From assembly GCF_018977255.1 (NCBI RefSeq), contig NW_024704745.1, forward strand, positions 12,152,001 to 12,216,000: 64,000 nucleotides of DNA. The letters run 5' to 3'. The notes below the pieces were generated by a model. The model ran no database searches, had not been told where the DNA came from, and was given only the letters and a program-made list of their open reading frames with translations. Below, one piece after another: positions 3,421 through 45,193 of the stretch (its first letter is position 1; each line of letters starts with the position of its first letter). A program made the position numbers and the translations under genes. The DNA comes from Callorhinchus milii. Taxonomy: Eukaryota.

Positions 3421-4401
3421 ACTGGTGACTGTTGAACAAAAGGAGCAGCTGGGACGGTACAGTAAGCGTCTTTCACATCAGCCAGACGTCTCAAAGTGCT
3501 TCACAGTATTTACTGATAGTGTATTGACTGTGTAATTTGTCAGTCAACTCGGCAGCCAATTTATGCACAGCAATGTCTCACAAATAGACGGAAATTGAAG
3601 GATCAAATTTAACTGCTGATTGGTGAGCAGTGGGACAACATGAACCAGAAACTAAACTCTGATAATAAACAAGGAAGACAGAGGGGAGACCGGGAGAGAA
3701 AAATAACAGACGACCAGGTAAAGGTAGAGAGAGAGAGACAGGAGGCAGAAGGCAAGCAAAGCAAGGCTTGGATAAGCTGAAGAGAGTGAAAATAAAATAC
3801 ACAAAATACACAGTCAATACATGGACTGACAGTCCGCCATGAGGAAAGCAGATGCATACCTAATCCTCATTAGTTTTTATCACAACTCAGTGTGCAGGTA
3901 CAACCCAGGAAGGTTAATCCCGAAATGCTCTCTCAGCGTTGCAGGCATGAGATAGCTGAATAAAAGGGGTCGTGTTATGAAGGCAGGGGCTGAATTCACG
4001 GTTCACTTCAATTCTGCTTTGCGTTCTCCTACAAAATTTGTCACTGCGGTGTAAAGGTTGTGGAATGTTAACCCTTCTTCCATTAATTTTCCTATGTGGC
4101 TGCACTAGCTCTCAAGGTACAAACCAAGCTCATTGCAGTGCATAGTATGTTATAACCAGCACTGAGTCAATAAAACTCCCAGTGGTCTAATTTTACCTGT
4201 CACTGAGTCGCTATCTAGTATGGTTGGTTTGGTTTCCTACTCAACTGCCGGCACTGACTAATTGAAACGCACAGTATCTTTTAAACATTTTGAAACTTAA
4301 CAGAATTAACTTCAGTTCAGAGTAAATTAAGTTAGAAACCAAAACAGAAGTCGCTGGGAACACTCAGTAGGTCAGGCAGCATCTGTGGAGAAAGGAAAGT
4401 G

Positions 4402-4438
4402 AGTCAACGTTTCGGGTCCACGACCCTTCGTCAGAACT
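4402..4438 (-). ncRNA. Minimal type I hammerhead ribozyme motif (intact core)
   Basis: Minus strand AGUU-CUGACGA-A-GGGUC-GUG-GACCC-GAAAC-GUU-GACU: stem I AGUU/GACU, stem II GGGUC/GACCC, palindromic AACGUU in place of stem-loop III. Confidence 0.75.
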
Positions 4439-5057
4439 AGGCCATGTTGGGAGGTAGAGGCTTTTAAGGACTAACAGAGAGGCAGGGCAAGGAAGACAAA
4501 GGAGAAAATGGGGTAGAGGTCGAGATGATGGGTTAAAGAGGTATTAATGATGCAAAACAAAGTGGGGGAAATTGCTACAAAACAGGCAGCAGAGAGAAAG
4601 GGTGTGCCTGGGACGCAGATGATGTGGTCACAGAAGAGGGGGAGGGAGAAGGTGCGCTTTTATTGTCTGAAATTATTGAAGTCAATATTGAGGCCAGATT
4701 GAGGTCCCTAGCAGATAGATGAGGTGCTGTTCCTCGAGCTTGCGCTGTGGTTCATTGGAACAGTGTAGCAGACCGTGGATGGAGAGGTCAGAGAGGGGAG
4801 GGAGAGAAGTCTCATCTATCTGCTAGGGACCTTACAGTCCTCTGGCCTCTTTCTGCTTGCGTTCTCCACCTTTGTTTTGCATTATTAACACCTCTTTCCC
4901 CCTGTTTTGTTGCATTTCCCCCCCCTTTGTTTTGCATCATTAAGACCTCTTTAACCCATCATCTCCTGAACTCTACCCTATTTTCTCCTTTGTCTTCCTT
5001 GCCCTGCCTCCCCGCTCTTTGTTAGTTCTTAAAAGCCTCTCCCTCTCAACATGCCCC

Positions 5058-5094
5058 AGTTCTGATAATAGGTCGTGGAACCGAAACGTTGACT
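5058..5094 (+). ncRNA. Degenerate hammerhead motif (core CUGAUAA)
   Basis: AGTT-CTGATAA-TAGGTCGTGGAACC-GAAAC-GTT-GACT; G8>A core change and weakened stem II. Confidence 0.55.
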
Positions 5095-5460
5095 CACTTT
5101 CCTTTCTCCATAGATGCTGCCTGACGTGCTGAGTGTTCCCAGCGACTTCTGTTTTTGTTTCAGATTTCCAGCATCTGCAGTATTTTGCGTTATGCTTAAA
5201 CTAAGTTAGAGGCTGAGTAGAACAGGAAATTGCCATGACTTAAAGTCATCTCCGGAAACTGTTAGTCCTTTTAGGCCATTCACAGTGTGAACAGTTAAAC
5301 ATTCTGCTCTTGCAGAGACTGGTGATGTAATGTTTTGAGCTCTGGATATAATATCAATTCAGGGAGCGAGGGAGGAGACAGAGTGGACACAGGTGCCTTG
5401 GTTATACTGAATGCTGCCAGTGTAACAACTCTGCAGCATCAATCTAAATTAGGTGTCAGC

Positions 5461-5830
5461 CTGCCTGGTTCAGTTGTTAGCACTTTTGCCTTCCGTGTTG
5501 TGGCTTTGAAATCATAGTCTAGACTGACCCTCCAATTCAGTGTTGGGGTACGCTGCCTCAGCCAGAGGTGCCATCCTTCAGATGAGACATTAAACCGAGG
5601 TCTCGTCTGCCTGTTTAGGTAGACATCAAAGATAGACAATGCTATTCAAAAAGTAAAGCGAGTTTCTTCTGAAATCCTGGCCAACAATCCCCAAGATAAA
5701 ATTGGTCATGGTTATTGGGGGATATTGCTTTGCGCAAATTGCCTGCCGCGTACTTCCCCACAAAAATACACACAGTCACACAACAACAAATTACATATGT
5801 ATGAGGCGTCCTCCTGACATATAGAGTATT
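5461..5830 (+). mobile_element. Deu-domain SINE (SacSINE1-like)
   Basis: gaggtgccatccttcagatgagacattaaaccgagg...gcgcaaattgcctgccgcg motifs, recalled from the shark DeuSINE consensus. Confidence 0.65.
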
Positions 5831-8800
5831 ATAATTTATAATTAATTTGAATGCGTGTGTAAGTGTGTATCCACCGTTTGTGTGTGTGTGTCTGTGCTTA
5901 TGTACATATATCTGTATGGGGAAAGGGTCAATCAATTCAAACTAGCAAAACTAATTATAAAAAGACTGGAGTTGTAGCAGCAGCATTAGCTGAAGGAATG
6001 GAATAGATGTGGGCTGTGATAGAGCAGAGGATATGGTAATTGGAATTGAGGTGGGGGAGATTCTGCGGGCAGAATTATTTTGGGGTCCTCTTACAGAAGC
6101 AAAATTGGGACCAGTGCAATAGAACCCTTTAATTAGGTTGTGCTCTTGTTTTCTCGAGCACTGCTTTGGAATATAAAAATTGTTTCAGATTATGCTGTTT
6201 TAGTGGTTGCATTTCAGTTTAATCTAATCACTGAAATGTAGGGTAACCATGGGAGAAGTACAGTACCAGACCGACCTAGTTAATTTAAAGGCCACATTGT
6301 TTACTGATATTCAGCAAATGGGACTGCAAAGAATAAGGGGCTCTGCACTGCATTACAAAGTAATAAATCTCTCTCGGCTGTTGGGAGCACACTATGAAAC
6401 CAGAGTTCAATGCTGAAACAGTCCAATTACACAGAATGTGTTGAATTTCGTATTATAATACGAGTCCTCTTGGCACCCTCATTAGCACAACCGTGTGAAG
6501 CTATGGGGAACTGAACAATCGAACACACACGATGTTCACATCTACAACATTAAGAGAAGCAATTACTTCAGCAATTGAATGTTTCCATCAGTTGAAGGGA
6601 TTGATTGAGAATTCAGACATCAAAGCTGTGTAAATTGGAAGAACAGTTCTTAAAGCATGCATTCAGCTTCTTATAGAATAACTGTCTTTTACTGCACAAG
6701 ACAAGTCCTCACTCATTTGGATTGCTTTATTCAGTCAATGTATTGACTATTACATGTTGTGTTTGATGATTGCTCAGCTAGTAAAATGAAGTGTGAAATG
6801 ATACACCTGGCTTTATTTTATTCCTGAAGAGCAAATGCATTAATCTGCTGAACAAATTCTGTCAAAAGGACTATTTCTAATGCGTGTAACTCAACCTAGG
6901 ATGTCTTGCTGAACAAACAGATCAATCTTTAATTCTGTATTCAGGTGGTAAAGTAATTGTTATATTGCTACAATAGCCTAGTTCACAGTAACTTGGAACA
7001 TAGATTTTGAGCACATTCTCACAGCAATATGTATTCACCATTTTAGGCAGGGATAGGAAATTCACCTGACCTCTCCGGAGAGTACTGACTTCTGGTTGAT
7101 TTTAAGTAATTTCTCAAAGTTGGATTCATCTGTTAATGATATAATCATTTTGCTCAAATGCTTGCACCTTTCGGATTCACAAAATTTCACTACTTTTACA
7201 GTACTGTGCTGTAAAATCTTCAAAGTTCTTGATAAAAATACGTAAAAACGAGATTAATTAATTAGTTAATTAATTAAGATTAATGCCGTGAATGCACTTT
7301 GTTCAAAGCCTAGTCAAGATTTGTGCCACTGATGGTGTTAAGATTTGTTAAAGATGTGGAATATAAATAAACCGAGATTTGGAAGAGAGTAAGCAGTAAT
7401 GGGGCTAAAGAAATAAAGCTAAATTCAATTAAAAAGGTGTTGTGGAGGGGAAAGAGCATATAGTCGTACAAAAGTGATTAAAATTCTTAGTACATATTTC
7501 TCGCCATATCTTTTTAAAGCCTTTTTAAATAAAAATCTCCCTTGTGTATCACTGGTGTTTTCTCAATTGAAATGCCTTGTGCGTTTATAGAAATGCAGTG
7601 CTGGTATTTTATTCCTGATCTTTTCTTTGTTCCTTCCTCAATTTTTTCAAACCATTACCAGTAATTGCGATTCAGTTAGTCACCTCGTCCATTCACTGTG
7701 ACAGAACACAAGCCATTTTTTTTTNAAAGAAATGAGGCATAAAATTAATCGTTGCATGTACAGGGCCTGTGGCAAATTGGAGTGGCACCTAGGAAGGTTC
7801 CAGTTCATTCTAAATATCCAAAATGATAAGGCCTATAAATGGCAAGTGTATGTGTTGCAACAGGGCAATTAAAGGCATCGGGGTCTAACATGTAGAATAT
7901 CTTAACTGTTTCTTAATGAAGAAATTTTGAAGTCTGTGACACCACTCAGGCTCCTCCGACTCGATCTATTTTTGAAGCCAGGTTCCCTTGAGTCGGCGTA
8001 ACAAACTCCAGATACTAAAAGGAGTCCTTCATTGTATTTCTTAATTGAGAAACACATCCAGAAATACTAAAAATTCGACCCCATTGCCTTAAATATCGGA
8101 AATGTTTGATCCTCCTTGTATTCTTTGAAATGGTCTGCAAACCCTGCAACGAGTCCTGGGAGCGATGGCATTTAGCAGACGAACACCACTGACATTTATT
8201 AGAGAAGAATCAGTGTAGTATAGTAACATTGTGTCCATTAATGGATGTCTGATCTGCTCAGCCTCATTAATCAATATTTATAGTGGATTCACTGTGCTAC
8301 TGACTCGCAAGTCTTCGAGTACCGCACAAAGCTCCGCAAATCCATTTGTCTGGGAGCTGCCGTCTATTCTCTTTAAATCGCCAGCTCATGCAGTGTGCTG
8401 TAAGCATACAGGCAAAGTCGAGGTTCAGCCACATGCAGGTGGCTTCTTTCTCCAATGGTTTCTCCAAATAAAAGACAAATGGGAAATATTGGTATCTTCG
8501 CCCCCCCCCCCACCCCACCCCAAGAGAAAAGCAGTAATCTTTTGCATTTAACAAAAGCTTGTCCAGCTCAGTGTTTTAAATGTTTTTCACTTGCCAGATC
8601 AACAATACTCAGGAGCTCGACTGACTGCCTTCAAGGCAAACTATTTGCATGAAGTCAAATGGGCCTCCAGCCATCGTTTCTGCTGCACCACTTACAATGT
8701 AGAGCAAGTGGCACAAACAAGATGTAATCCTTCTTCTAAATGCATCCTTTATTCTAAAATTGTCAATTAGATGCAGTGTAGCATTGCCAAACAGCCAGGT

Positions 8801-8984
8801 CACGAAGGAGATTAGTCCTTTTACTTTTGTTTTATTAATGTTATGTCACAATCTGTAGAGTCAGCAACCTGCAGGTTATTTGTAAATTCCACCCCCAGGG
8901 GTGGGATTAGCATTGGATTGTTAAAAGTGTTGTTAATACTTACTTTCATTTGGTGTAGCTTCTTTCACATCAGGGCTTTACAAA

Positions 8985-9260
8985 ATGCTTCACAGGATAT
9001 ATTGCAAAATGGAGTGACTCTGCGTTTTGTGCGCAATCGCGGCAGCAGATTTGCAATGGCCCCCAACAACGATGAAGTGAACAACAAATTTTATTTGGGG
9101 GGTTGTTAACCAGGATACTGGGAAAAACTCCCTTTTCTTTTCAAATAGTGCCATGGAACCTTTAACATCCACCTAAACAGACAGGACCTCGGTTTAACGT
9201 CTCATCTGAAGAACAGCACTGTATTGGAGTGTCAATTTAGACTATATGATTTCAAATTCC
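8985..9260 (-). mobile_element. Deu-domain SINE (SacSINE1-like)
   Basis: caaatagtgccatggaacctttaacatccacc...ggacctcggtttaacgtctcatctgaag, the reverse complement of the same motifs. Confidence 0.65.
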
Positions 9261-10708
9261 AGATGTTGGGAAACGTAGAAGTCAAAATTGTGACATTTGA
9301 TGTGATAATCGCATCATCAATTATCATCAGTCATCATGTACGATTGAATCATTGAATGATAGACACGGGTTTAACCTCCTAACCCTCCCCAGGTCACAAA
9401 GCCTCAGTGGGCAGCATTTGAGCTCTGAGACTCTACCCCACTTGTATATAAATACAAGTTGTTGATGAGTGCTGCTACATGGATACTCGTCTAACTAACC
9501 ATCAGCAGTTAAAAGTCCAACTATTGTGCTAACGTGTGTGTATGGTGGGTTAGGGCTTATACCTTTGTGTCTTTAGTTATTGACACACTCTCTGCCTCAC
9601 CATTTGAGTTTTCAGGCAATCTATCTCTACTCTCTGGGACTCTCTCTGAAATGTCCTGCTAATTGCAACCTCCCTTTCCTCTTTCAAAACTTGTTAGAAA
9701 ACTATTTATTTGAATCAGTCAACTCCCTCTTCCTCTCCCAATCTTAGGTTTCCACTTCCTCTCCATAACCATTTTGAGGCATATACTGAACACGTGATAA
9801 GGCACTGTATCAAATGCAAAGATTACTATTATATAAGTGCGTGTTGATGGTGTGATTGCAATTTTCAATAATGTGAAAATTTCTCATCAGATGCTCACAT
9901 TTTCAACCCGCATTGCTGATGGTTAACAGGAGCAACTTCAGAGCTTGTAACCCTAGCAAACAGTGGAAAGGACAGGATCCACCACTTTTTGGCTCTTAGC
10001 TGATGTTTGTGGTTTGCCCAGTTACGAGGTAAAATAATTTCACACTGGAGAAGTGAGACAGCTGTTAAACCTCTCCAGACAAATTAACTGTGAAGATTAG
10101 TCACCCAGGAACATCACTGACCACACAAGTGAGCATTCAGTTCCTCACAATTAATTCATTCACTGGATAGACAATGCAGAACGTGTAGCTGTCCACGTAG
10201 CAGTGTGAATAAATCTACTTACTTAACGGGCCGCTGGCTTAGAATGTCTTTGTGGCTTGTGCCGCATTTTGGCCACAAAATATACAGTCAATTAGAATTC
10301 TGATCAGCTGGACATTTGACACATGCAGAAACCATTAATGGGCTTAAGAGTTACCAAACCAGACTGAGAGATCTGCTTATGTTTCGCCCGCAAAATATAC
10401 AGTCAATTCCCTTTACAGTATATTCTGTGAAGCGCTTTGACGCGTTGCAAAGATGTGATAAAGTGTCATATCAAATGCAAAGATTATTATTATAACATCA
10501 GTCAAACTGATCCAGCCAGAGTTCCACTGAGTTGTATTTAACTTTGCTCTACAATTTATATACCTTTTCATATTATATTTCTATATTTAACATTTCCCAG
10601 GCAAGGAAAAACCTGAAGCAAGTTTCCTTCCAAACCACGAGTATTTGTGAGACACTGCTGTGCGCAATTTCGCCCATAAAATATACAGGCAATTCACTTT
10701 ACAGTATA

Positions 10709-10946
10709 CAAAAGGCAAAGTACTGCAGATGTGGGAAATCTGGTATAAGCACAGAAGTCGCTGGGAACATGCAGCAGGTCAGGCAGCATCTATGGAGAAA
10801 GGAAAATGAGTTAACGTTTCAGGTCAATGACCTTTTGTCAGAATCTTTCAGCAATGACCTTTCGTATTGCTGAAAGGTTATTGACCTGAAGCAGTGATTC
10901 ATTTTTCTCTCTCCATGGATGTTTCCAGGGACTTCTGTGTTTGTAT
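10709..10946. mobile_element. Palindromic 238-bp non-autonomous derivative of the same Penelope-like family, inserted in a SINE
   Basis: Left arm shares cagaagtcgctgggaac...caggtcaggcagcatct...gttaacgtttcaggtc with the 4337 element; right arm is inverted; perfect 14-bp TSD cactttacagtata at 10695-10708 and 10947-10960. Confidence 0.8.
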
Positions 10947-11379
10947 CACTTTACAGTATATTCTGTGAAGAGCTTTGAGATACCTCTACGATGTGATAAG
11001 GCGATATATCAAATTCAAGGATTATTTTTATTACTAGCCTCACTGTAGCATTATTGTACCAGTGAGCGGCTAGAGGGCTCGAGAACCTGTGTAAGCTGTG
11101 TCACCTAACAGGTGTCTGCAGGGAATTTACTGAAAAATGGCTGCAGCATTTGCTTACAAAAACAGTTACTATATTTGGTAGTAATTACTGTGAAACGCTT
11201 TGGCATTTTAAGGCACTATAAAAATACAAGTTTTTTTCTTTCTTCAGATAGAGTTCGATTTAGCTTAAAGTTGTAGAGATGTCTTTAACCCAAGTAGAAG
11301 ACAGTGTGGATGTCAATAAGGGAACAAGATGAACTTTTTTGTGCATTTAAATGACCAGAGCCTTTTTTTCTCCCTACAG

Positions 11380-11790
11380 ATTGCAAGTTGAAAGTTGACA
11401 AAATGAGGAGGAACCTTGTAGTCACAGAAAAAAGTGATGTCCACTTAAACTGCAGCATCCGAAACCAAACCAGCCCGGACGCACAGTTCGCTGTACTCTG
11501 GTACATGCAAAAATCACCAGACAAAAGCAACAAACTTATCCTGAAATCCAGACGGGATTCCGTGGTGGAGCATGGGAACTGGTTAGGCAGAGGCGAGAAG
11601 TCGAAGGAGAGACTTCAGTTTGACAAGCCCTCAACTGGACTGTACACTTTGGTCTTACAAAATGCCAACGTTGATGACAGCGGCTGGTACTACTGCCAAG
11701 TGGAGGAGTGGCTGCTGAACCCCAACGATGTTTGGTACAAGTTAGGAGAGAAGACATCTGAATCGACTGTTGTAACTGTGCAGCATCCAG
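11380..11790 (+). CDS. IGSF3: IGSF3 coding exon, V-type Ig domain (corresponds to human IGSF3 domain 6)
   Basis: Acceptor tttttttctccctacag|AT, donor CCAG|gtattg; 411 nt, phase 1-1. Translation (D)CKLKVDKMRRNLVVTEKSDVHLNCSIRNQTSPDAQFAVLWY...DDSGWYYCQVEEWLLNP has the Ig Cys/Trp/D-x-G-x-Y-x-C pattern and resembles human IGSF3 QLNCSVKSQTSQNSHFAVLWY (recalled). Confidence 0.93.
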
Positions 11791-11899
11791 GTATTGGGTC
11801 TATTGGGTTTATTCCTTTTGGAAAAACTTTCAAGTGTTGCCCTCTTCCCTAGAATGTACTGTTGGATGGAAGCAATGAATCGGAAAACAAAACATGAGT

Positions 11900-12222
11900 G
11901 CGACAACCAATTTTCACTTAGCAATGTCCCATAAACAGCCATGAAGTTAGTGATCTATTTTACCAGAGGGATTGTTGACCTGGACACCAGGAGAAAGTTC
12001 CCTTCTCTTTCCAAATAGTGCTATTGGAACTTTAACATCCATCTGAAGAGGCAGACAGGACCTCGATTAAATATCTCACCTGAAAGAAGGCACCTCCGAC
12101 AATGCTGCTTCTCCCACAGCACTGCATTGGAGTGTCGGCCTTGATTGTATGAATTCAAAGCCCCGATGTGAGGCTTGAGGCCGCAAACTTCTGACTCAGT
12201 GTTACCAACTGAGCCAGGCTAA
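11900..12222 (-). mobile_element. Deu-domain SINE (SacSINE1-like) with tRNA-derived head
   Basis: ggcacctccgacaatgctgc...cttctgactcagtgttaccaactgagccagg. Confidence 0.7.
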
Positions 12223-12379
12223 CGCATAAAATCAATCTTAACTTTAAAGCCGGTTTTGTGTAGTTGTTAAAAGAACGTACAGAAAACCAGCTTGAAACTT
12301 ATGTGTTTATTTCAGAAATTGCCAAATTCTGGATGCCCCAAAATACTAAGGCAGTAAATCTGGACACAGATAGAATTGC

Positions 12380-12655
12380 TGCCCTGTGAGTCAGCATACT
12401 ATTCAGCCAGGATGGGTAGGTTGCAGTCCATCACAGTCACTCCCGATTCAAGCTACACTTGTCATCCTCAAAGGGGAATCTTCACCAGGGATTGCTAGAT
12501 CGATCTCAGGAGAAATAGTTTGGCTGATTTCCCACTTCCTAACCAACAGTGGGTGAGGTTTATTGTAGTGTCCCAACTGATGCCCTGCTGAAAAGCAACT
12601 AACTCTGCACAACCCACAGATCAAACCTTGGGATCTCCACTCAGTCATCGGGGGG
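12380..12655 (-). mobile_element. LF-SINE-like, diverged
   Basis: ggctgatttcccacttcc and tgtagtgtcccaactgatgccc...aactaactctgcac match the reverse complement of the recalled LF-SINE core. Confidence 0.5.
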
Positions 12656-13274
12656 TATAACTTAGTGCTTTTTCCTCTTCGGATTTGATGCCCAGGATCT
12701 TTATAGTGTAAACTCTTTGCATTTGCTCTTTCGCTTCAATTTCTGCTTTTGCCGCTGGTGCTCACTGGTATATCTGAGGTTGTAAGCTGGGAGGTACAAC
12801 AGATATAAATCAGTTGCACAGTTCTGGCTGCTGTTTTGGTGGATGTGTCAATGAACGGATCGATTGGAAAATTCAGATCCAAGTTAAGTGTGCCATCATC
12901 ATATATGATGGAAGAAAGAGCAATAATTGTGTATGTGCTTCTTTACTCCTGCCTCCATTAAACCAGCAATTATTTCCAACAACTCTTTTCAGTTGCTCTT
13001 CTCTATGTAACGTAACCACCACAAAGAAAAAGAGATCACTAACGAAGCAAGCCCAGCTTGTTCTTAATCCACACATCCTCTCTTGTGAAGCTCTTTAGAA
13101 CTGAGCCAGCGAGGAAAGAGAAATACTTGGGTAGCAGTCACTCTGTCTTCTCCCCTAAGTGCCACTCGTGGCTGAAGCCCAAATCCATTTGCTCCATTGT
13201 ACCAAGGTAGCATGCCCTGCCTGCTCCTTATTGACTGTTATAATCTAGAGCTGCTCTTCATTGCTGCCATTTAT

Positions 13275-13697
13275 ATATAATAATAATAATTCTTACATTT
13301 GATATAGCACATTAATAGGTCATCAAATCATCTCCAAGTGTCTCACAGCACATTTTGTATGTGTTTTGGGTATGAATGTGGCTGCCAATTTACACACAGC
13401 AATGTCCCACAAATAACCATTGTGAGAGTGAGTGACCAATTTTATTTGGAGTATTGTTGGTCAGGACACTGGGAGAAACTTCCATCTCTTTTCGAATATT
13501 GTAGTGGATCTTTACTGGTAGACCACACCTTGATTTAATGACTCATCCAAAGACGGCACCTCCGACAATGCTGCACACCCCCCAGTCCTGTATTACAGGG
13601 TCAGCATAGATTATACGCCGTATAAGCCCCCAAGTGGGGATCAAACCCACAATCTTCTGACTCAGAGGCAAGAGTACTACCACTGAGTCAGCCTGAC
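13275..13697 (-). mobile_element. Deu-domain SINE (SacSINE1-like), near full length
   Basis: Tail attcttacatttgatatagc, core gctgccaatttacacacagc, head cttctgactcagaggcaagagtactaccactgagtcagcc. Confidence 0.7.
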
Positions 13698-14270
13698 ACT
13701 GTTTATACAGAATGTGGCTTCGCACAGTTCTGTAACATAACCCAAAATCTTATCATTCCTGCCTGCAGGAAACACGTTTGCTGAGCCTTTCCACACACAG
13801 TGAAAACACAGCACACAGCTATTTTCCCACAGATATCGTACCAGCGGGATCCAGTTAATCATTAAATGGTTAGTGACACTGCAGTAGGACCACTTACGTA
13901 TCCAGAAAAAAAATCACTTGTACAGCAACAAATATACAGACATATGAAATTTACATATGCTGACCCTTTACCCCCACAGTCACTTAATAAGTAAGTGTTT
14001 CAATTGAGCTGTTTAACAGTTGACAGATAATCATTTACAAAGGTTGTGATGAAGAGTCATTAACATGTTCCTCAAATACAAATTTATCTGTTCGAACTGG
14101 AAGCCTTGAATGCAAATCATAATCGTTATTATAATACATTCAACAGAGCAGTATTTCATGGAAATGAACAGGGGATTGTTGATTGAGGTTTACGAAACTG
14201 CACACTTTATACAAAGAGACTAACTCATACTGGTGATAGCACCCTGCTTAGTCAGGTATTCACCAACACC

Positions 14271-14410
14271 AAACAAAAGGCAAAATACTGCAGAGGCTGA
14301 AAATCTGAAATAACAACAGAAGTCGCCGGGAACACTCAGCAGGTCAGGCAGCATCTATGGAGAGAGGAAAGTGAGTTAACATTTCAGATGGATTGCCGTT
14401 TGTCAAAACT
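14271..14410 (-). mobile_element. Single terminal arm of the Penelope-like family (hammerhead core decayed)
   Basis: aaaatactgcagaggctgaaaatctgaaataacaacagaagtcgccgggaacactcagcaggtcaggcagcatct..., homologous to the arms at 4337 and 10709. Confidence 0.75.
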
Positions 14411-14590
14411 AACACCCTGCTCAGTCAGTCAACCATTCATTAGCACACTGCTCAGTCAACCATTCACCAGCACACTGCTCAGTCAGTCAACCATTCACTA
14501 GCACACTGCTCAGTCAGTCAACCTTCACTAGCACATTGCTCAGTTATTCAAGCATTCACTAGCATACTGCTCAGCCAGTCATTCACTGCA
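14411..14590. repeat. Minisatellite, ~30-bp unit CACACTGCTCAGTCAGTCAACCATTCACTAG, about 6 copies
   Basis: Directly visible tandem units, degrading toward the 3' end. Confidence 0.85.
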
Positions 14591-14609
14591 CTTATTCTCA
14601 GCATCTGTG

Positions 14610-14915
14610 GTGTGGGGAGGATGGAAAAATATTACCAAGGGAGCTTCCTGCTCCTGATCGCTATGGTGTATCCACTGCTGGAAAGTACACATGTGGATGT
14701 CAAACCTAGATCAGCTTCAGCTGTGATGTTCGTCCGCCCTCTGCTCTCATTCAGCACTGCTGTTGCATAGCCCTCAATGTCTGATCTCACACATGGTGAT
14801 TGCTCAATGTCTAGTCTCACACAGGGTGCATACCCACTTGGATGGGAGGGTGGAGATATCAAGAGATACTATGCTGTGAGCCAGTGGCTTCAGAAGTAGA
14901 GGGGAGAAAATTGGA
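14610..14915 (+). mobile_element. LF-SINE-like (3' two-thirds)
   Basis: cttcctgctcctgatcgctat, ctgctggaaagt, gtctagtctcacaca and terminal agaggggagaaaattgg are recalled LF-SINE motifs. Confidence 0.7.
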
Positions 14916-15854
14916 AAAAGTAATAAACCCATTGCTTAAAAACATCTTGCTGCCATAGCCATTTAAATTATCAAACCAATATGAAAAGTGGGAAGCATGG
15001 AAATTGTTTGAACAAAAGGAAGCCATTGTACATTAGTTATGAAGTAATATCCTTTTGTTCCTCTTTGTGTGTTCCAGTTGATTTTATTTGAATATTTTGG
15101 ATTACATTATGTTGTGTGCTGCTGATATCATCAAGGGAATTGGCTGGGAGGAGTCACTGAGCCTTAGGATTCAATTAACATGTCTCCCGATAAATTGTTT
15201 AGTCCGAGATGCTCGAGCAATCCTGTTTATTCAGACCAACCTCAGCAACTCCTCTCAGCGGCTCAGAAATGGTCTCATATATGTTCCTGTTTGGCGGAAC
15301 TATTAAAACATAATTGTGGATTTGCATGAATACATGCAGTTTTTATTCTGCTGGTGGGAGGTGTGGGAGGAGAAAAGAGATGAAGGGAGCGAGAGCAATA
15401 GTAATACTTCATGGGAGAACAATATTAATATTCCCTGTGTAGTTTTAAATTACATACAAAAATCTTAAAATGAATAATTTGATGGTGTCAATCCACAACT
15501 GTTTGTGGGATACCGCTATGTGCAATTGGCTGCCGCGTTTCACCCACAAAATATACAGTCAATTCACTTTGCAGTATATTCTGGGAAGCGCTTTGAGACG
15601 TCTTGAACACATGATATCAAATGCAAGGATTATTATCAAACATTTTCACCATTATTTTAGTTTCAAAGGAAGTACAGAAATAAAGAAGCAACAACAGGCA
15701 TTTTTTTTAGCTCCCTCCATGCTGGATAGCTTCTAGGAGCGCTGCACAGGGGCGGGCTTGCCCACCGGAGAAGACAGGGGAGAGCAATGTGGTTTATGCT
15801 TTTATTTTAAAGCTGCCAATTCCTCCCCCTTGCAGATCAACTGCTAGGCTGTAC

Positions 15855-16025: not shown

Positions 16026-16561
16026 TCCCAGACAAAATGTCGACAATCACTGTTAGGGCTTGCTTATGGGAAAAAAAGGTTCCTCTTCAATGAGGGAGAC
16101 CAGCATCTGTACAGAGCTATCCCCAGCATAAGGAAACAAGTTAAATGTCTTCAAGAGAATGAGTGGTGGGGAAAAAAAAGTCAAGAAAAAAAAATTGGCA
16201 ACAAGTTCTTTATATATCCTACATTGACCCACTTAAAGGAAGAAAGTCTGAATAGTTTCTCATGATATTCTGGTGCTTATCCAGCAGCACTAAATTGTTA
16301 AATGTTCAATTACAAAAAGAAATTGGAAAGCTCACTCAAGCTATCTTGTTTGCAACTGCTACAAATGATTTTGTTCGTTGATCAGTGCCTCCTTGCTAAT
16401 GGCTCATAGCGCTCAGGGATCCTATCCGCATGAAAGGTGCTAAGTAAATCCAAGTTGTTGTCAGAGACAGACTCTGCTTTGATAAGAAAATCCTTTTGCT
16501 GGTTGAGTTTGCTGTTAAATGAAATTGAAATCTCGCGTATATTTTTCCCTTGTGTCCACAG

Positions 16562-16972
16562 AAAACAATTTGCAAATCCTGAAAACTGAGCAGAACATAT
16601 CCATGCCGGAAGACAGCTGGATTCAGCTGGATTGTAACATCAGCAACCGCACCAGCTTGGACTCCCAGCTCTCTGTGACCTGGTATGTCTGGAGGATGCT
16701 GGAGCCTGAGAGGCAGCGCATTTTCAGACTGAATCGGAATTCTGTCTTCGAGTACGGAGGCTCAGCCGACAACGCTGTGAGACTGAAGGACAGGCTGCAG
16801 TTCGAAAGGTCCTCCACTGGTCTGTACAGTTTAGGGCTACAGAGAGCAACCACTGGCGACAGCGGAGGTTACTACTGCCATGTGGAGGAGTGGCTACTTG
16901 ACCCCCAAAACATCTGGTACAAAGTGGGAGAGGATCAGTCTGGAATGACTGCTGTCACTGTACAACAGCCAG
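16562..16972 (+). CDS. IGSF3: IGSF3 coding exon, V-type Ig domain (domain 7)
   Basis: Acceptor tttttcccttgtgtccacag|AA, donor CCAG|gtactg; 411 nt, phase 1-1. QLDCNISNRTSLDSQLSVTWYVW...GDSGGYYCHVEEWLLDP matches IGSF3 domain 7 NRTSITSQLMVEWFVW (recalled). Confidence 0.93.
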
Positions 16973-18339
16973 GTACTGTATGAGTCTTAATCCCCCCACT
17001 TTAGGATAAGATTTAATGAGTTGTTTTCGAAAGCTATCGCACTGACAGGCATCAGGAACACATTACCAGTAATGTGTAGTTCAGGGCTTGCCTTCATATC
17101 CCATGTGGCCCCTTACTAATGGCCAGTGGCTGAGTGCTTTGGTGGATTAAGAATGGTCGCTGTTTGATAAGGCGGAACCAGAATTCTAATGGATTTCTGA
17201 TCAGCACAATGCGATTCGCCTCCACACCGGAAACAAATTATAGCAGGTTTCAGATCATGCCGCTGTTTACGAATTTAGTGCTGCAATCACACCAGGGAAA
17301 TCACAAATACACAGGGTCAGATTACTGAATCTGAAATCGACAATCTTAAACTGCCCACTAAACTCCCAACAAAACAACACATCATATGCAGGAATGTAAC
17401 GATCCTCCCTCTAGGATGGAACCTGCTTTGTGCCCTGAAAAATTACAGTGGCACATCACATTGTCCAGGATTGCATTGTGGATGTCGCTTACTTTGCTTA
17501 CTAGCATGTGTGTGTTTTTGCCTTCCCCATCTTCTCCACTCCCTCCTCTCCTCCTTCCCCCAAGTGAGTTGGAGCAGGCTTGTCAGTAGGTAGGTTTATG
17601 AGTGGGCAGCTGGGTGAACTCGATTACACGCACCGAGTGCTCCATTTACTATCAAACTCTGAAAGACACCATGCTCAAAAATGCAGATACACATGATACC
17701 AATGCACAGCAGCAATCCACAGAGGAAACCAGAGCAGTATTGTTATGCACAATCCCAATGCTGACAATCCTACCTGACTGAAGCAAAGGTGTAAATTGGC
17801 ACTGGTTTGAGACCCACTATCCTGTAGGATGGTGGGTCTCAAAACAGTGTTAATTCAATGCATCCCACAGAAGTCAGATAGTGGTCTCGTCATTAAATTT
17901 CCCAAGTGCAGTCATCTCCCTCCACTGCCCTGGCCTTGTTTCTCCAACAACATTTGCACACTATTTCTTTGTTATCTGCTTTGTTTCATTTCAGTTGAAA
18001 CATGATTTTTTGGGGGTGTATTAATGAACAAGTGCACAAAATAAAGTTTAACTGATCCTCCAGCAAGATATTCGCAACGTGATACTCAAAGTTTCTGACT
18101 AAAACTGCAACAAGTTAATTGCGGTCTTGACACTGGCCCATTCAGTTGCCTACTCTACCTCTCCAGCCTCTGCACGCATGTTGTGCCTCACACAATGGGA
18201 TATGTTACAACTGTGGACATGCACTGCTATGAGCCAGCTGCCTTCAGCCCATTCGCATTACACCATTAGTGGATTATTTCCTCCTGTTTATTTAGAAGGG
18301 GGGAATTGGGAAGCGAGAAGAGAGATCAATGGTTAAGTG

Positions 18340-20595: not shown

Positions 20596-20974
20596 CGCAA
20601 GTGTGCCCAGAGAGTGAAAGGTGATAGTTGGGAGAGGAAGGAACAACTGAGGGAACAACAATAGGTGCACTTCCCAGAAAGGTCACTGACTAGGGTTGAG
20701 GAGCGGGAGCCCTTGCTACCTAATCTCATGGGTATAATAAACAGTACCTCCAACCTCCGACCCAACCCTCATCGATTTTCCTTGCAGATAAAGAATAGCC
20801 ACTTGAGCAAGACAGCAAAGACATTCAGCTTTTACGAAACAGTACTCTGACCATGAGTTAGCACCTTCAGGAAAGGAGGAGACATTAAAAGAGGGGAAAG
20901 AACCTGCAGATTTATGAAATTTTGATTGTTAAAAACCTTTTCTCCCATTTTGTTTCCTGTCACCCTCACAAAAG

Positions 20975-21397
20975 AATTCAAGATGCAGGTGGATAAAACT
21001 GAATTGAATATCACAGTATCGAACAAGGGCAACTTTCAGCTCAACTGCAACGTGACATTCCGAACACGAGGGGATTCACGATTTGCTGTGTCCTGGCTGG
21101 CGTGGAAATCCAAAGGGGCCGTTGACAGGATGGTGAAGGAAACTATTTTAAAAATCGATCAAAATTCGGTCTTCGAGTACGGCAGCTCACGCAGTGGAGC
21201 TGAAGGGATGAAGGACAGACTGAAGCTAGAGAGACCCTCCAGTGGATTGTACAGCTTGACAGTGAGAAACGCCGACACCAGCGATAGTGGGAGCTACTAC
21301 TGTCATGTGGAGGAGTGGATTCAAAATGCCAACAATGCCTGGTATAAACTAGGGGAAGGGGAGTCTGGACTGCTTATCATCACCATACAAAACGCAG
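20975..21397 (+). CDS. IGSF3: IGSF3 coding exon, membrane-proximal V-type Ig domain (domain 8)
   Basis: Acceptor cctgtcaccctcacaaaag|AA, donor GCAG|gtaact; 423 nt, phase 1-1. FQLNCNVTFRTRGDSRFAVSW...SDSGSYYCHVEEWIQ. Confidence 0.9.
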
Positions 21398-22289
21398 GTA
21401 ACTTGTTCCCTTCATAATCATATAATGACCATAGTGTTATAAATTCTACGTGAGCAGTAGAAAGTAACTACCTGACAGGTGTATGTTTATTCCATAAATC
21501 AGAAGTGGTTTTGGAAAAGCTGTATTTATTGGTTAGTATTAATGCAAAAAAATATAAACGGTATAATCGTAGTGTCAAGTTTTGAGAGGAGTACAGCACC
21601 ACAGTGGACACTTCCTCTTAGAAACAGAAAGGAATCTGAGGGACGGTCACCCTTGACCGCCCCCATGTGTTTGTTTCAGAATAGCATTTTTGGTCGACTG
21701 CTTAATTTAAAGTGTAGCGTAATAACTGGGTTTCTGACACTAGGTTGGAATTTGTGCAATGAAATTTGTCTGTATGTCATTTAGAGAAAAAAGTATTTTT
21801 ATCCTATCTGTGAACTGAATTTCCCAGGCCTGGAGGGGATACCAATTGAGCTTTGGAATTTTGATGGGGAGCCCAATTAAATGCAAGGATTCTCAATAGT
21901 GGTTGCATTTGGTATAGTCCCTTATCGCATTGTTGAGATGACTCAAAGTGCTTCACATGATGTACTGTGAAGTGCAGTGACTACTCATTTTGTACCAGAC
22001 CACAGTAGCCAATTTGCACACAGCAATGTTCCACAACTTGCCATGAAGTGAAGAATTAGTTTTATGAGGGGATTATTGTCCAGGACACTGGCATGGACTA
22101 GTTGGACCAAATTAACTGTTTCCATGCTATAGAATCAATGTGAGTGGTACAAAGTACCTAAGGCCAGATGTATTATTATTATTGTTATGTATATTTATTC
22201 CATAAGTCAGAAATGGTTTTGGAAAAGATGTATTTATTGGTTAGTATTAATGCAGAAATAAAATAAACGATACAAACCCTGGAAAGGAG

Positions 22290-28109: not shown

Positions 28110-29160
28110 ACAACAACAACAACTTGGATTTATATAGTGCCCTCCACGCCGGACGGCTTCTCAGAGCGCTTTACAGTTTAGGATTCCGGGGCTGAGACAG
28201 GGGGAAGGGTGGGAAGGTGACCAAAGGCCCGGTCAAAAAGAAAGGTCTTCAGCAGAGACCTGAAAATGGGAAGGGAGGGAACGAGACGATGGGAGTGAGG
28301 AAAGCAGTTCCGGAGCCTCAGGGCATAATGGCTGAAGGCATGGCCGCTGAGGGTAGAACCGAGGACTTGGGGAACAAGGAGGAGGCCAGACCCGGAGATC
28401 AAAGGCAACGGACACTGTGCTGAGGAGAGAGGAGGTCAGAGAGGTCGGGGGGTGCAGAGGAGTGCAGGGACTTGAATACGAGGGTGAGGATCTTGAAATC
28501 AATCCTCTCTGGGATAGGGAGCTAGTGCAGTCTGGCAAGGACTGGGGTGATCGGGGAGCGGAGCTTGGTGCGAGTGAGAATGCGAGAGCAGAGTTCTGAA
28601 TGATTTGGATTTTATAAATGGTAGTGGAGGGGAGACCGGCGAGGGGAGCATTTGAATAGTCCAGCCGGGAGGTGACAAAGGCATGGACCAGAGGTTCAGC
28701 GGCTTTTGGGGAAAGGTATTGGCGGAGACGGCAATTCGTTGGAGATGGAAGAAAGCGGCGCTGGTGAGGGACCAAATGTGGGGGAGGAAGGTTAATTGGG
28801 GGTCGAACCTGACGCCTAGGTTGCGTACAGGTTCGGAGAGTTTTAGGGGGAGGTTGGGTAGGTGGAGGAGGTGAGGACCATGAGATTTTAGACGTTGATG
28901 AGAGCCGAAGAATATGTCTTCCGTCTTGTCAACGTTCAGCTGAAGGAAGTTTGCGCTTATCCAGCCCCTGAGATCTGACAGGCAGACTGACAGAACATCA
29001 GGGGACTGGGGGTCCCAAAGAGAGGTGGAAAAGTAGAGTTGGGTGTCATCTGCGTGCATTTGGAAATGTACGCCATGTCTGCAGATGACGTCCCCAAGAG
29101 GGAGCATGTAGATCAGAAAGAGGAGGGGGCCAAGGATGGATCCTAGGGTACCCCACAGGT
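28110..29160 (-). mobile_element. 5'-truncated L2 LINE with reverse transcriptase remnant (frameshifted)
   Basis: GSILGPLLFLIYMLPLG...HADDTQLY...LQLNVDKTE...VRNLGVRFDPQLTF; AFVTSRLDYSNA; FSHYALRLRN spread over three frames; (caa)n tail at 28110. Confidence 0.92.
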
Positions 29161-31934
29161 GACCGACTAGATCTTGCACAGCTGGTCTGAATGAATCAGT
29201 TCATAGAGCTCACAGCCCTTGAACGTAATATTGGTGGGAGTGCATTTGAATGAGTTACGTTCTTACAGGAAAGGAACCCATCCTTAGTATGAGATGTGTA
29301 GGTGTATGATTTACAAAAGGTCGAAGGCTTGAAATTTGGGGAATGGAGGGGGTTGAACGGAGGTGAATTTTTTTGATGCCTTTTATAAAACAGGTTTTAC
29401 CAATAAAGCTTTAGAAATGTAACGTAACTTTTGTTATTAATTATTGTGAAATGTGGCTCTCTCTACATAATGAGAAAACTTTTAGAATAAACAAAGTGTG
29501 GCAAAGAGTTTGGGCTTGAGAATGTCAGTATATCGAGTAGTAGGTTGGGTCAAAAGCTGCTGATTGTCTTTAGGTGGGATTCATAAGGAACAGGAAAGGG
29601 CTTCGAGTGTTCCACATCAGAACAGTGCAATGGCCTGTATTAGTGAGTGCCTTAAAGATAATCCAAAACTGAATTCACTGATAGATAAATTGGTTTGGGA
29701 AAAGACCATCAAACTGCAACTGAAAAACAGCAAATTAGATGATCAAATGCTGAATTGCGTTGAAGCCTTTGGAGACTGGAGGGTTCAGGTTATAATCTCC
29801 GCATGTCATTCAGTGCATTCCTGTGGAATAATCCTGCACATCTCTTTCATTCTAGCCTGTAGTTGTTGTGGATTCAGCTCTGGAACATGATTGGTACCGA
29901 AAACACAGCGAGTTTGTGACGCCACACTGTTACTAGTATGGCTTGTTGAACTGGCACACTGCGCAAAGCAGTAGCATCAGTGAGTGTACTGGAACCGCAC
30001 TTCAAAGCCATTGATCAGTGAACTTGATTTAAAAATGCACAGGGGGATGGATGTTGATCTTCAAAACTGTCTAAGGTTTTGTGCCCACTGTAGAAGAATG
30101 TTGTGTTCAACACTGTTGAATGAATGTAAGTGTACCCCATTATTAACAGTGCCCTTTAATTAATATTTAACTGAAGATAAAGTTCTGCGGATAGTGCATT
30201 AAGAATGCTGTACACATATCCTGTGGGGAATCTGACACTGAAGCAAAGGTGCTGTTGCCACAATTTGCCGTCAGCAGAAATTGTAACAAAAGACATCTTT
30301 GTAACCCTAGATAAAAGGTTTTTAGCTACTTTATAATGCAGGTTGCATGCAAAGTAATGAATACGTAAGACAGACTTACAGCCATTGATAGAAATTATTT
30401 TGGGTGGGGGGGGGGGGGGGGGGTATGAAAATATGGTGTGTGTGTGTGTGTGCGTATGGTTGCAATCCAAAGGATATCTGCATGGAAGTCCTGCACAATA
30501 AACTCTTATCCATCTATATTCGCCTTGGGACATCCTCCTGACATGAAAGGCACTATACAAATCTAATTTTGTATTATAATTGTGTATTACATTCCAAAAA
30601 TTCAACCCCACATGAGACCAATTTCAGAGATTCTCACAATATTTAATTTGAAGACTCAGGGCTTGTTTCCCATGGAGTTTTGCTCAGCCAATTGATTGAT
30701 ACGTGCAGAAACAAGAAACCCATTATACTTAAGCATATCCAAACCAAACTGCTAAGAAACCCACAAGTTACTCGGAAATTTCCATTTGTTTCACAGTATT
30801 TTGGGAATTGCACAATGCTGAATTCCAATACAAATATCAGTGAATGCGTTAAATACAATGCTGAAGAGATTGATCCAAACATAAATACCCTGTAGCCCAT
30901 CACTCTTTAAATGTCATGTATTTTGGTACTGGAATAAATGTGTTTGTGTTGTGGGGGTGTAAGGGAGAGAATGTAGTTGATGAGTGAACCATGTCTTTTC
31001 AGATGCTTCCAGAAATCACCTTTATACTGGAAGTTCTCACTGCACCATTCAAACTGAAATTACCTTTTAACAGCAGCTCCATTATTTGGAATTTGTTCCA
31101 GGCAGAATTGAAGAACTGGTTGAATGACATTCCTATATATATAATAATAATCCTTGCATTTGATATAGAAATCACTGTAAAGTGGATTGATTGACTGTAT
31201 ATTTTGTGGGCTAAATATCTTTTAATCCACTTCATTAGGGAATGATCTCAGTCGTTGCTTCAAACTGCCAGCTCGTACCATCATTCTGCAGTTCAATCTG
31301 GGGATTAACCCAAATCTGCTCAACAAGAGTGAAATTGGGAACCTCAGTTCAATCCCTTCTCTGGCTGCACTTTGTAACTTGCAAATTTGAATTTCAAAGA
31401 GGAAATGGCTTGGATGTTTGAAGCTTCTGCTAACTAATAATTATTTGCATCCTTTTTAAAGTTTGCCAAGTTTGAACTGAACATCTTGACACATTCAGAG
31501 CAGATGCCTCATAAAAACATATATACCGTATGGTGATACCACCTGCAGTGGCAAACTTTGTTTTATATGCATTCAAATAACGCTGCATCTTTCCATCTAC
31601 TTATTGCTATGCCAACTGAGATACTAAGCAAGCTCATGTTTTAGACATGTAGAGCTTTGTTATTAACTCTACCGGTGACAATCTGGTCAGATTCAATCAG
31701 CTAAGTATGAACAAAGAATTGGTCAAAAGCCCGATCACTAAAACTACATCAGTTATTCCATTTGTTTCAGGTTTAGAGATATTGCAAGCAGAATCAATAG
31801 GGAAAAATCAAGTCTCCTGAAGAAAGTACTCTATGCACAAATGTATTTACTTAGTTACAACAAAAACAACAACATGTGTAGAATGAATAGGAATCCTTCA
31901 GACAGTTGGATACTGGCCCTTTACCTTATAATAA

Positions 31935-32266
31935 ATAATAAAATAATCCTTGCGTTTGATATAGCGCCTTATCATGTCTTAATTGTAAATGAATTGACTG
32001 CATATTTTGTGGGCAAAAGGCAGCAGCCAATTGCGCACAGCAGTGTCCCACAAACAGTCGTGGATTAAGTGAACAAATTACTAATTTTTTTGAAAGAATT
32101 ATTACCCCTGGAAAATCGACTAACAAGCGGATTCCTATTTAATGTTAGGTAAACAGACGCATGTGGAGTAAGGAAACTTGCCCAACATTTCGCCCTGCCC
32201 GGGAATCAAACCCAGGTCCTCTCGTTTGCGAGGCGAGTGCTCTAGCCACTAAACTACAAAACTCCA
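31935..32266 (-). mobile_element. tRNA-Ala(CGC)-derived SINE, full length
   Basis: Reverse complement begins ggagttttgtagtttagtggctagagcactcgcctcgcaaacgagaggacctggg; core and tail shared with the other copies. Confidence 0.85.
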
Positions 32267-35892: not shown

Positions 35893-36212
35893 GGAGTCCT
35901 GTAGCTCAGTGGTTAGAGCACTCGCTTTGCAAGCGAGAGACCTGAGTTCAATTCCAGGCAGAGGGCGAAACCTTGGGCAAGTTTCCTTACTCCACACAGA
36001 GCCTAATAATAATCCCTCCAAAAACCAAAAACAATAATAAATTGGTCATTTTCAATCTACGACTGTTTGTAGGACATTGCTGTGCCAATTGGCCGCCGCG
36101 TTCGCCCACAAATATACAGTCAATTCACTTTACAGTGTGTTCTGTGAAGCGCTTTGGGACGTCCTCCCGACGTGAAAAGCGCTATATCAAATGCAAGGAT
36201 TATTATTATTAT
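35893..36212 (+). mobile_element. tRNA-Ala(TGC)-derived SINE, short subfamily
   Basis: ggagtcctgtagctcagtggttagagcactcgctttgcaagcgag (A box), gttcaattcc (B box), Deu core, tail gggacgtcctcccgacgtgaaaagcgct...(tta)n. Confidence 0.88.
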
Positions 36213-41128: not shown

Positions 41129-41516
41129 GGAGTCCTGTAGCTCCGTAGTTAGAGCACTCGCCTCGCAAGCGGGAGGACCTGGGTTCGATTCCCGGCAGGG
41201 CGAAATGTTGGGCAAGTTTCCTTAATCAACAAGCCTCAATTTGCCTAGCAGTAAGTAGGAATCCGGTTGTTAGTCGATTGGCTCATCGCTTTTCCAAGGG
41301 TAATAATTCCTTCAATATAGATAAAAATAATTTGGTCACTCAATCCACAACTGTTTGTGGGACACTGCTGTGCGCAATTGGCTGCCGCGTTTCACCCACA
41401 GAATATACAGTCAATTCAATTTACAGTATATTCTGTAAAGCACTTTGAAGACACCTTGCTATATTAAATGTAAGGATTATTATTATTGTTGTTGTTATTA
41501 TTATTGTTATTGTTGT
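41129..41516 (+). mobile_element. tRNA-Ala(CGC)-derived SINE, full length
   Basis: ggagtcctgtagctccgtagttagagcactcgcctcgcaagcgggaggacctgggttcgattcccggcagggcg, then core, tail and (tta/ttg)n. Confidence 0.88.
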
Positions 41517-42911: not shown

Positions 42912-43141
42912 NNNNNNNNNNNNNNNNNNNNNNNNNNNNNNNNNNNNNNNNNNNNNNNNNNNNNNNNNNNNNNNNNNNNNNNNNNNNNNNNNNNNNNNNN
43001 NNNNNNNNNNNNNNNNNNNNNNNNNNNNNNNNNNNNNNNNNNNNNNNNNNNNNNNNNNNNNNNNNNNNNNNNNNNNNNNNNNNNNNNNNNNNNNNNNNNN
43101 NNNNNNNNNNNNNNNNNNNNNNNNNNNNNNNNNNNNNNNNN
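42912..43141. other. Assembly gap (230 N)
   Basis: Run of N inside the G/T array. Confidence 1.
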
Positions 43142-44214: not shown

Positions 44215-44381
44215 NNNNNNNNNNNNNNNNNNNNNNNNNNNNNNNNNNNNNNNNNNNNNNNNNNNNNNNNNNNNNNNNNNNNNNNNNNNNNNNNNNNNNN
44301 NNNNNNNNNNNNNNNNNNNNNNNNNNNNNNNNNNNNNNNNNNNNNNNNNNNNNNNNNNNNNNNNNNNNNNNNNNNNNNNNN
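44215..44381. other. Assembly gap (167 N)
   Basis: Run of N inside the G/T array. Confidence 1.
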
Positions 44382-45030: not shown

Positions 45031-45155
45031 TGACGTGGCTCAGATCTCACTGACCATCACCAGGTCATTTGTGATTGGTTGAAAGCCCTGCTCCCTGATT
45101 GGCTGAGGAGAACGTGACGTTATTTGAATGCGCCGAAAAAGAAGAAGGGGGAGAA
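45031..45155 (+). promoter_or_regulatory. TTF2 core promoter / 5'UTR with cell-cycle-type elements
   Basis: TGACGTGG 45031-45038, ATTGG 45074-45078 and 45098-45102, TGACGTTA 45115-45122, TTTGAA 45123-45128, GCGCCGAAAA 45130-45139, directly upstream of the exon-1 ATG. Confidence 0.7.
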
Positions 45156-45183
45156 ATGGAGAGAGTTTTGTGTGAGGAACACG
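45156..45183 (+). CDS. TTF2: TTF2 coding exon 1 (MERVLCEEH-G)
   Basis: AAAATGG Kozak context, 28 coding nt then G|gtatgt donor. Resembles human MEEVRCPEHG and joins in phase to exon 2. Confidence 0.88.
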
Positions 45184-45193
45184 GTATGTGATA

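Follow-up and report, generated by a model that had tools for sequence, protein, structure and literature searches.

Self-cleavage by a double hammerhead was reportedly described by Forster et al. in 1988 for newt satellite 2 and ASBVd RNAs, and Lunse, Weinberg and Breaker (RNA Biol 14:1499) are said to be a further source on metazoan minimal hammerheads (min-HHRs), the type found in Penelope-like elements (PLEs). PLE min-HHRs lack helix III and loop 3, carry a palindrome at positions 15.2–16.2, a G10.1–C11.1 pair and a conserved nucleotide between A9 and position 10.1, and have a helix I of 4–5 bp and a helix II of 6–8 bp; they frequently occur as motif pairs on opposite strands, 100–700 bp apart (Cervera and de la Pena 2014, PMC4209133). 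A single Schistosoma motif showed no cleavage in vitro, and dimer and trimer constructs cleaved weakly (PMC4209133).

The hammerhead of the Anolis PLE did not cleave unless the protein of the element was supplied; changing C3 or G8 abolished activity, and the double mutant regained part of it (Frangieh et al. 2024, PMC11167929). The same study found that insertion in vitro had no need for cleavage, that RNA-seq ends at the cut site were absent, and that the Anolis enzyme cleaves and extends both DNA strands. Across the tandem junction, the consensus of this element, Poseidon_Ac, reads CCU CUGAGGA U GCCUGC CAUAGAU GUGGGC GAAACGUC AGG (Frangieh et al. 2024 supplement, PMC11167929).

PLE insertions are known for heavy 5′ truncation, for an adjacent inverted 5′-truncated copy and for a 30–40-bp "tail", often at one end only, and they are reported to occur preferentially at microsatellites (Craig et al. 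2021). The tail has been traced to two internal reverse-transcription start sites, a signature termed unique to PLEs (Frangieh et al. 2024, PMC11167929). Non-LTR retrozymes, a further group of hammerhead-bearing repeats, are present in Chondrichthyes (Li et al. 2026 preprint). Here we compare these systems with a hammerhead motif, called copy A, and the repeat that carries it in a 64-kb stretch of DNA from a cartilaginous fish, referred to below as the window.

Results

An intact minimal hammerhead core on the minus strand

Read on the minus strand, positions 4402–4438 give AGUU CUGACGA A GGGUC GUG GACCC GAAA CGUU GACU, letter for letter the sequence given in the preliminary description of this locus. 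Every position of the hammerhead core (C3 U4 G5 A6 N7 G8 A9, G12 A13 A14, A15.1–U16.1 and an H17 other than G) is intact, with C3–A9 (CUGACGA) at 4434–4428 and G12–A14 (GAA) at 4413–4411. An unpaired, bulged A at 4427 directly follows A9 and precedes a 5-bp helix II (GGGUC/GACCC, GUG loop, 4426–4414), in which the G10.1–C11.1 pair is present as G4426 with C4414. A15.1, C15.2, G16.2 and U16.1 (4410–4407) make up the self-complementary ACGU of a loopless helix III, and H17 is U at 4406, which gives the cleavage triplet GUU, C being more usual at this position. The 3′ strand of helix I (GACU, 4405–4402) pairs with AGUU (4438–4435) over 4 bp, three of them Watson–Crick and one G-U. Re-reading the locus confirmed the pairing of stems I and II that had been drawn earlier, and the core numbering placed the predicted cleavage correctly at the proposed site, between 4406 and 4405. 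The previous assignment as a minimal type I hammerhead with a palindromic stem III is borne out by the features shared with the published PLE min-HHRs.

We scanned both strands of the 64-kb window with a min-HHR descriptor consisting of CUGANGA, 0–1 extra nucleotide, a helix II of at least 4 bp, GAAA, complementary 15.2/16.2, U, H and a helix I of at least 4 bp. Copy A was the single match. The descriptor had 0 matches in 300 dinucleotide-preserving shuffles, and its loosest version 1 in 300; for the bare pattern CTGANGA-N14-GAAA, chance alone predicts 0.14 occurrences per window. The Rfam Hammerhead_1 search that had been recommended as a check gave a negative answer at three settings: hammerhead families were absent from the matches at gathering score, and no hammerhead family appeared at E ≤ 10 over 3800–15200 (11.4 kb) or on the isolated 71 nt (4385–4455). 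The silence of Rfam is likely explained by its models expecting a helix III hairpin, which is absent from the copy A motif. For genome scans, this means that Rfam models miss loopless minimal hammerheads and that a descriptor search is needed.

The carrier repeat and its insertion anatomy

Copy A belongs to a dispersed repeat for which nhmmer, run with a profile built from the copies, found five copies in the window (Table 1). The positions and core mutations reported earlier for the other copies were reproduced, and the earlier total of four was wrong: a fifth copy, E, had been overlooked and is the inverted partner of copy C. The short 3′ end of the repeat is reached 68 nt beyond the copy A motif.

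Table 1. Positions of the hammerhead motif, its carrier repeat and neighbouring features in the window.
Feature	Position	Strand	Detail	Basis
Intact minimal type I hammerhead (copy A)	4402–4438	minus	sole descriptor match in window	read directly
Profile match, copy A	4332–4447	minus		nhmmer
Profile match, copy B	5049–5196	plus		nhmmer
Profile match, copy C	10708–10848	minus		nhmmer
Profile match, copy D	14272–14418	minus		nhmmer
Profile match, copy E	10861–10956	plus	E=2e-20	nhmmer
Arm A, insertion 1	4337–4724	minus	5′-truncated, ends at short 3′ end (...TTCTGTTTTGGTTTC), without tail	inverted repeats, alignments
Arm B, insertion 1	4811–5196	plus	internal deletions relative to A; relic at 5058–5094	inverted repeats, nhmmer, alignment
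Left target-site duplication, insertion 1	4323–4336		TAAATTAAGTTAGA	matches 5197–5210 at 13/14
Right target-site duplication, insertion 1	5197–5210		TAAACTAAGTTAGA	read directly
Arm C, insertion 2	10709–10855	minus	relic at 10809–10845; 33-nt tail 10709–10741	sequence, nhmmer
Arm E, insertion 2	10861–10946	plus	without tail	inverted repeat I6, sequence, nhmmer
Left target-site duplication, insertion 2	10695–10708		CACTTTACAGTATA	14/14 identical to 10947–10960
Right target-site duplication, insertion 2	10947–10960		CACTTTACAGTATA	read directly
Solo copy D	14272–14418	minus	with tail; 5′ end abuts 31-nt minisatellite; relic at 14374–14410	sequence, nhmmer
Copies of the repeat family in which insertion 2 is nested	10381–10460, 10667–10746, 10919–10998, 15537–15616
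ATG frame in four copies	4335–4382 (−), 5114–5206 (+), 10709–10789 (−), 14274–14354 (−)
Immunoglobulin V-set exon-sized ORFs	11388–11852, 16519–16983, 20926–21417	plus
tRNA-like matches	32199–32256 (−), 35899–35961 (+), 41131–41203 (+), 48672–48734 (+)		three partial and mutually similar

Arms A and B, 88% identical over 336 aligned nt, form one insertion (~4337–5196) in which their 5′ ends point towards one another (inverted repeats I1, I4, I7 and I9); arms C and E form a second, shorter one. The PLE hallmark of an adjacent inverted 5′-truncated copy, in a unit flanked by a 14-bp target-site duplication, is thus seen twice (A/B and C/E). An extra tail of 33–35 nt (AGATTTCCAGCATCTGCAGTATTTTGCC...) terminates copies B (35 nt, 5162–5196), C and D, like the optional 30–40-bp 3′ tail of PLEs that is often confined to one end, and is absent from A and E, so that each inverted insertion is extended at one end only. 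From these structural hallmarks and the literature we infer that the carrier is a PLE; the inverted arms, the 14-bp duplications and the one-ended tail sustain the PLE setting implied in the preliminary description.

Insertion 2 is nested in another repeat family, the copies of which have ...CACTTTACAGTATATTCTGTGAAG... in common (families D2, D4 and D7), and a 31-nt minisatellite of 5.8 units (14408–14581) lies immediately next to copy D on its 5′ side. The start of copies C and E, like the separate start of D, falls no more than ~20 nt upstream of the hammerhead (10850–10870; 14410–14420); this common start, seen in two independent events only, hints at a preferred 5′ end, set by a transcription start or a template switch.

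No PLE reverse transcriptase (RT) or GIY-YIG frame was found in the window. The stop-free pieces of 4440–5057, between and inside the arms, had no Pfam match at E ≤ 10, no homologue and no BLASTP match to the C-terminus of Poseidon_Ac, and a GIY-YIG remnant in the arms, having no support from any of these searches, was rejected. We take the minus-strand stretch 4685–4822, as a lead only, to resemble the C-terminus of PLE endonuclease frames from fish. Since neither an RT nor an endonuclease frame was found, PLE identity rests on insertion anatomy and ribozyme type; such frames are expected to be missing from short 5′-truncated copies, which leaves less proof of PLE membership and does not affect its plausibility. 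The only RT in the window, a minus-strand fragment at 28499–29179 that shares 88% identity with an RT-domain protein of Callorhinchus milii, was rejected as the PLE body because its ADD box, its NLGV...D motifs and its Callorhinchus matches mark it as a LINE. Its similarity to that protein suggests a chimaera-like source genome.

An ATG located 22 nt past the predicted cut starts a reading frame (MLPDLLSVPSDFC...) that runs free of stops and frameshifts in four copies; no other part of the repeat is as well conserved. As a candidate PLE protein start, on the pattern of Poseidon_Ac, this frame (MLPDLLSVPSDF...) was discarded: a profile search against 1.84 billion proteins yielded four short proteins and nothing else, two of them spurious small ORFs that overlie related repeats (one in GCA_003427355.1, the other in a 1.5-kb metagenome contig). 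The conserved frame is more likely an RNA or DNA recognition module than a coding sequence.

Decay of the other copies

The relic cores in the other copies are damaged in different ways. In copy B the core reads CUGAUAA and helix II contains two mismatches, and copy C has CUGACAA (G8 to A) with a helix II of AGGUC/GACCU. Copy D combines UUGACAA (U3, A8) with a collapsed helix II and GAAAU (C15.2 to U), and in copy E a deletion of ~14 nt takes out the 5′ box of the core and GAAAC has become GAAGC. The descriptor scan and the copy alignment agree that copy A is the only one in the window with an intact core, as the preliminary description had it.

Over a shared 104 nt, divergence from the copy consensus was 4.8% for A, 3.8% for B, 13.5% for C, 14.4% for D and 26% for E; A and B being the least diverged, their insertion is the youngest in the window. 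CpG steps occur in the family core at C7–G8, in the helix II loop, at C11.1–G12 and at C15.2–G16.2. Transitions at these steps changed G8 to A in B, C and D, C11.1 to U in C, D and E, and C15.2 to U in D, in a window whose observed/expected CpG ratio is 0.37. The core losses in the older copies thus came mainly through CpG transitions, including the C7–G8 step, which illustrates how quickly a CpG-rich hammerhead core decays in a methylated vertebrate genome. Copy A has kept its core because its insertion is the youngest in the window. By a rough estimate, an arm with ~30 constrained positions stays intact at ~4.5% divergence with a chance of ~1 in 4, so one intact core in two young arms is unremarkable. 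At position 10.1/11.1 the pair is G-C in A and A-U in C and E, a comparison that covers five copies only and in which U11.1 could also have arisen by CpG decay.

A related repeat copy with a similar 3′ module was present in JGI metagenome contig Ga0262470_13348 (195–335), which is probably host (cartilaginous fish) DNA. This copy keeps CUGAUGA, indicating that G8 is ancestral; it lacks GAAACGUU, apparently through a deletion of ~13 nt. An exact scan with the most conserved 23-mer of the repeat gave one chance bacterial match in metagenome contigs, none in viral contigs and no extra copies. The joint presence of U3 and A8 in copy D equals a core covariation described by Cervera and de la Pena for a variant of the PLE hammerhead in Schistosoma. 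In copy D it is probably a product of coincidental decay, helix II having collapsed and both changes being simple transitions (G8 to A at a CpG).

Neighbouring exons and other features of the window

Immunoglobulin V-set exon-sized ORFs follow downstream on the plus strand, in accordance with the earlier statement that copy A is antisense to the host gene; no exon was identified upstream of 4402. A VEEWLL stretch in the first of these ORFs is reminiscent of the EWI motif of the IGSF3/IGSF8 family. At the far end of the window, a plus-strand ORF (57884–58366) had a weak SNF2-related domain match (E=5e-5, below the Pfam cutoff), which would be consistent with a TTF2-like gene downstream. The four tRNA-like matches are probably the heads of tRNA-derived SINEs and not tRNA genes. 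Strongly G-skewed, stop-free plus-strand arrays, with GC skew of up to 0.98, extend over 42000–47500 and include N runs, masked or gap, at 42912–43141 and 44215–44381.

Predicted activity of copy A

Folding with ViennaRNA disfavoured the hammerhead in copy A both as a monomer (hammerhead fold −8.2 vs −10.8 for the MFE rod) and as a dimer (designed double hammerhead −14.5 kcal/mol vs a dimer MFE of −28.3). Poseidon_Ac behaved in the same way (monomer −7.5 vs −13.7; double hammerhead −15.5 kcal/mol vs −31.6). Because a motif that cleaves in experiments is also disfavoured, folding energy does not discriminate, and thermodynamic folding was dropped as a test of competence.

The context of the motif was more telling. 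With 10–60 nt of native flank, helix II is missing from the MFE structure of copy A, and when 941 nt covering the insertion are folded, arm B pairs with 34 of the 37 hammerhead nucleotides in an arm duplex of −236 kcal/mol, which would hold the motif in any read-through RNA. Copy A also lacks a tandem partner, the nearest copy on the same strand being 6.4 kb away and core-dead. That minimal motifs cleave poorly as monomers and better as dimers, as stated at the outset, agrees with the single motifs that did not cleave and the dimers that cleaved weakly (Cervera and de la Pena 2014). The description of copy A as the only copy likely to be active holds for its core, the only intact one; to call it likely to be active goes too far, given the lack of a partner, the duplex with arm B and the protein requirement in Anolis. 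Activity of copy A at its locus is doubtful: judged by its sequence the core appears competent, and in situ it is probably inert. Inverted-arm PLE insertions bury their ribozyme in a long hairpin, and function cannot be read from a core that has stayed intact in a dead transposon copy.

Discussion

Taken together, our analysis makes it very likely that copy A is a dimer-type minimal hammerhead inherited from a PLE and left as a neutral relic in a 5′-truncated inverted-arm insertion. The motif sits in the 3′-terminal module of the element; in hammerheads of its class a single copy is unable to close helix III. In a live PLE, two motifs, carried by a longer-than-unit transcript or by two transcripts, would pair via the ACGU palindrome, and each core (CUGANGA, helix II and GAA) would engage the other copy at its GUH site and helix I strand, producing two composite active sites. 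The reaction may in addition depend on the element's own protein, which cleavage required in the only vertebrate PLE tested (Anolis). Copy A most likely does nothing for the host gene.

Two other origins of the motif can be weighed against descent from a PLE. The bare pattern is frequent enough, at 0.14 expected occurrences per window, and the Rfam models are silent enough over 4402–4438 for a chance match to the consensus, devoid of ribozyme ancestry, to deserve mention; yet this reading is effectively refuted by the complete absence of full descriptor matches from 300 shuffles, by the degraded motif found at the equivalent position in four paralogous copies, by its partial presence in a related copy from another source and by a layout equal to that of the Poseidon_Ac ribozyme. 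The carrier could instead be a non-autonomous, retrozyme- or SINE-like derivative that is mobilised by PLE machinery and keeps only the 3′ module with the hammerhead. Such a derivative would account for copies C, D and E, which are only ~85–150 nt long and each start ≤~20 nt upstream of the hammerhead, as well as for the longer arms having yielded no PLE coding sequence, and non-LTR retrozymes, which occur in a chondrichthyan, have been proposed to be derivatives of PLE pLTRs (Li et al. 2026 preprint). We nevertheless consider it rather unlikely, as the tandem array that defines non-LTR retrozymes is absent, arms A and B reach ~290 nt further upstream, as they would under random 5′ truncation of a longer element, and the ribozyme is of the minimal PLE type and not the canonical loop-bearing type I of retrozymes.

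A different question is why the intact copy is the one antisense to the neighbouring exons. If sense-strand hammerheads were purged for cutting host pre-mRNA, copy A would be a working ribozyme kept or tolerated only in antisense; it does lie antisense to the V-set exons, its sense partner B is core-dead, and hammerhead retrozymes are depleted from Xenopus introns, in a study that included no orientation analysis (Li et al. 2026 preprint). Each inverted insertion, however, supplies one motif per strand, so for the only young insertion an intact copy in antisense is a 1-in-2 event, and arms A and B are similarly diverged, with the ~1 in 4 chance of intactness estimated above. The antisense copies C and D are dead as well, minimal motifs do not cleave as monomers, and the sense copy would be sequestered in the same long hairpin, which leaves little to select against. 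Selection on orientation is thus very improbable and unsupported here, and the purging of sense-strand cleavage put forward in the preliminary description is not needed, CpG decay and the 1-in-2 orientation being sufficient.

For the neutral PLE relic that we favour, one further role can be imagined. Because a double hammerhead has composite active sites, an intact copy could act in trans, as the enzyme strand on transcripts of core-dead copies in which ACGU, GUU and a compatible helix I strand survive, and the AGUU of copy A does pair perfectly with the AACU of copy C. We regard such trans activity as highly unlikely; if it did occur, decayed PLE ends would make up a network of substrates open to cleavage by a few intact cores together with the PLE protein. 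Otherwise the importance of copy A goes little beyond annotation.

Comparison with known hammerheads

Non-LTR retrozymes resemble the repeat described here in that their type I hammerheads are linked to PLE terminal regions (Cervera and de la Pena 2020, PMC7229834). They consist of tandem arrays of 170–400-nt units with canonical loop-bearing hammerheads and give circular RNAs, whereas the window copies are dispersed or inverted, never tandem, and carry the minimal motif. The head-to-tail repeats with a canonical type I hammerhead by which non-LTR retrozymes are recognised are therefore lacking from the window.

As in newt satellite 2 and ASBVd, helix III of copy A is too weak for a monomer, and a palindrome would permit an extended helix III with composite active sites. 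In those RNAs, helix III is short and looped, the repeats are in tandem and the partner lies on the same transcript; copy A, in contrast, has no helix III loop, and its nearest same-strand copy is the distant, core-dead one.

The resemblance to Poseidon_Ac of Anolis carolinensis is closer. The two share the order of parts, an identical GAAACGU, the bulged nucleotide after A9, a short helix I (3 bp in Poseidon_Ac and 4 bp in copy A), a similar distance of the motif upstream of the insertion 3′ end and an optional tail between two reverse-transcription start sites. They differ in that the start codon of Poseidon_Ac overlaps A9 to G10.1 and its H17 is C, whereas copy A has no overlapping start codon, and its stop-free frame 22 nt past the cut could be linked to no long protein. 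Cleavage of Poseidon_Ac has been measured and is protein-dependent, while that of copy A is predicted from the sequence.

The best agreement is with the PLE min-HHRs as a class. Copy A has their type I topology, CUGANGA and GAAA boxes, unpaired nucleotide after A9 and G10.1–C11.1 pair, no loop 3, a palindromic 15.2–16.2 and a 4-bp helix I without loop–loop contacts; it is likewise located in a terminal repeat, with opposite-strand motifs paired a few hundred bp apart. It departs from them in its 5-bp helix II with a 3-nt loop (6–8 bp being typical) and in the triplet GUU, and its host is a cartilaginous fish, a group unnamed in the 2014 main text (PMC4209133). Copy A is a new example, from a cartilaginous fish, of the already known class of PLE minimal hammerheads.
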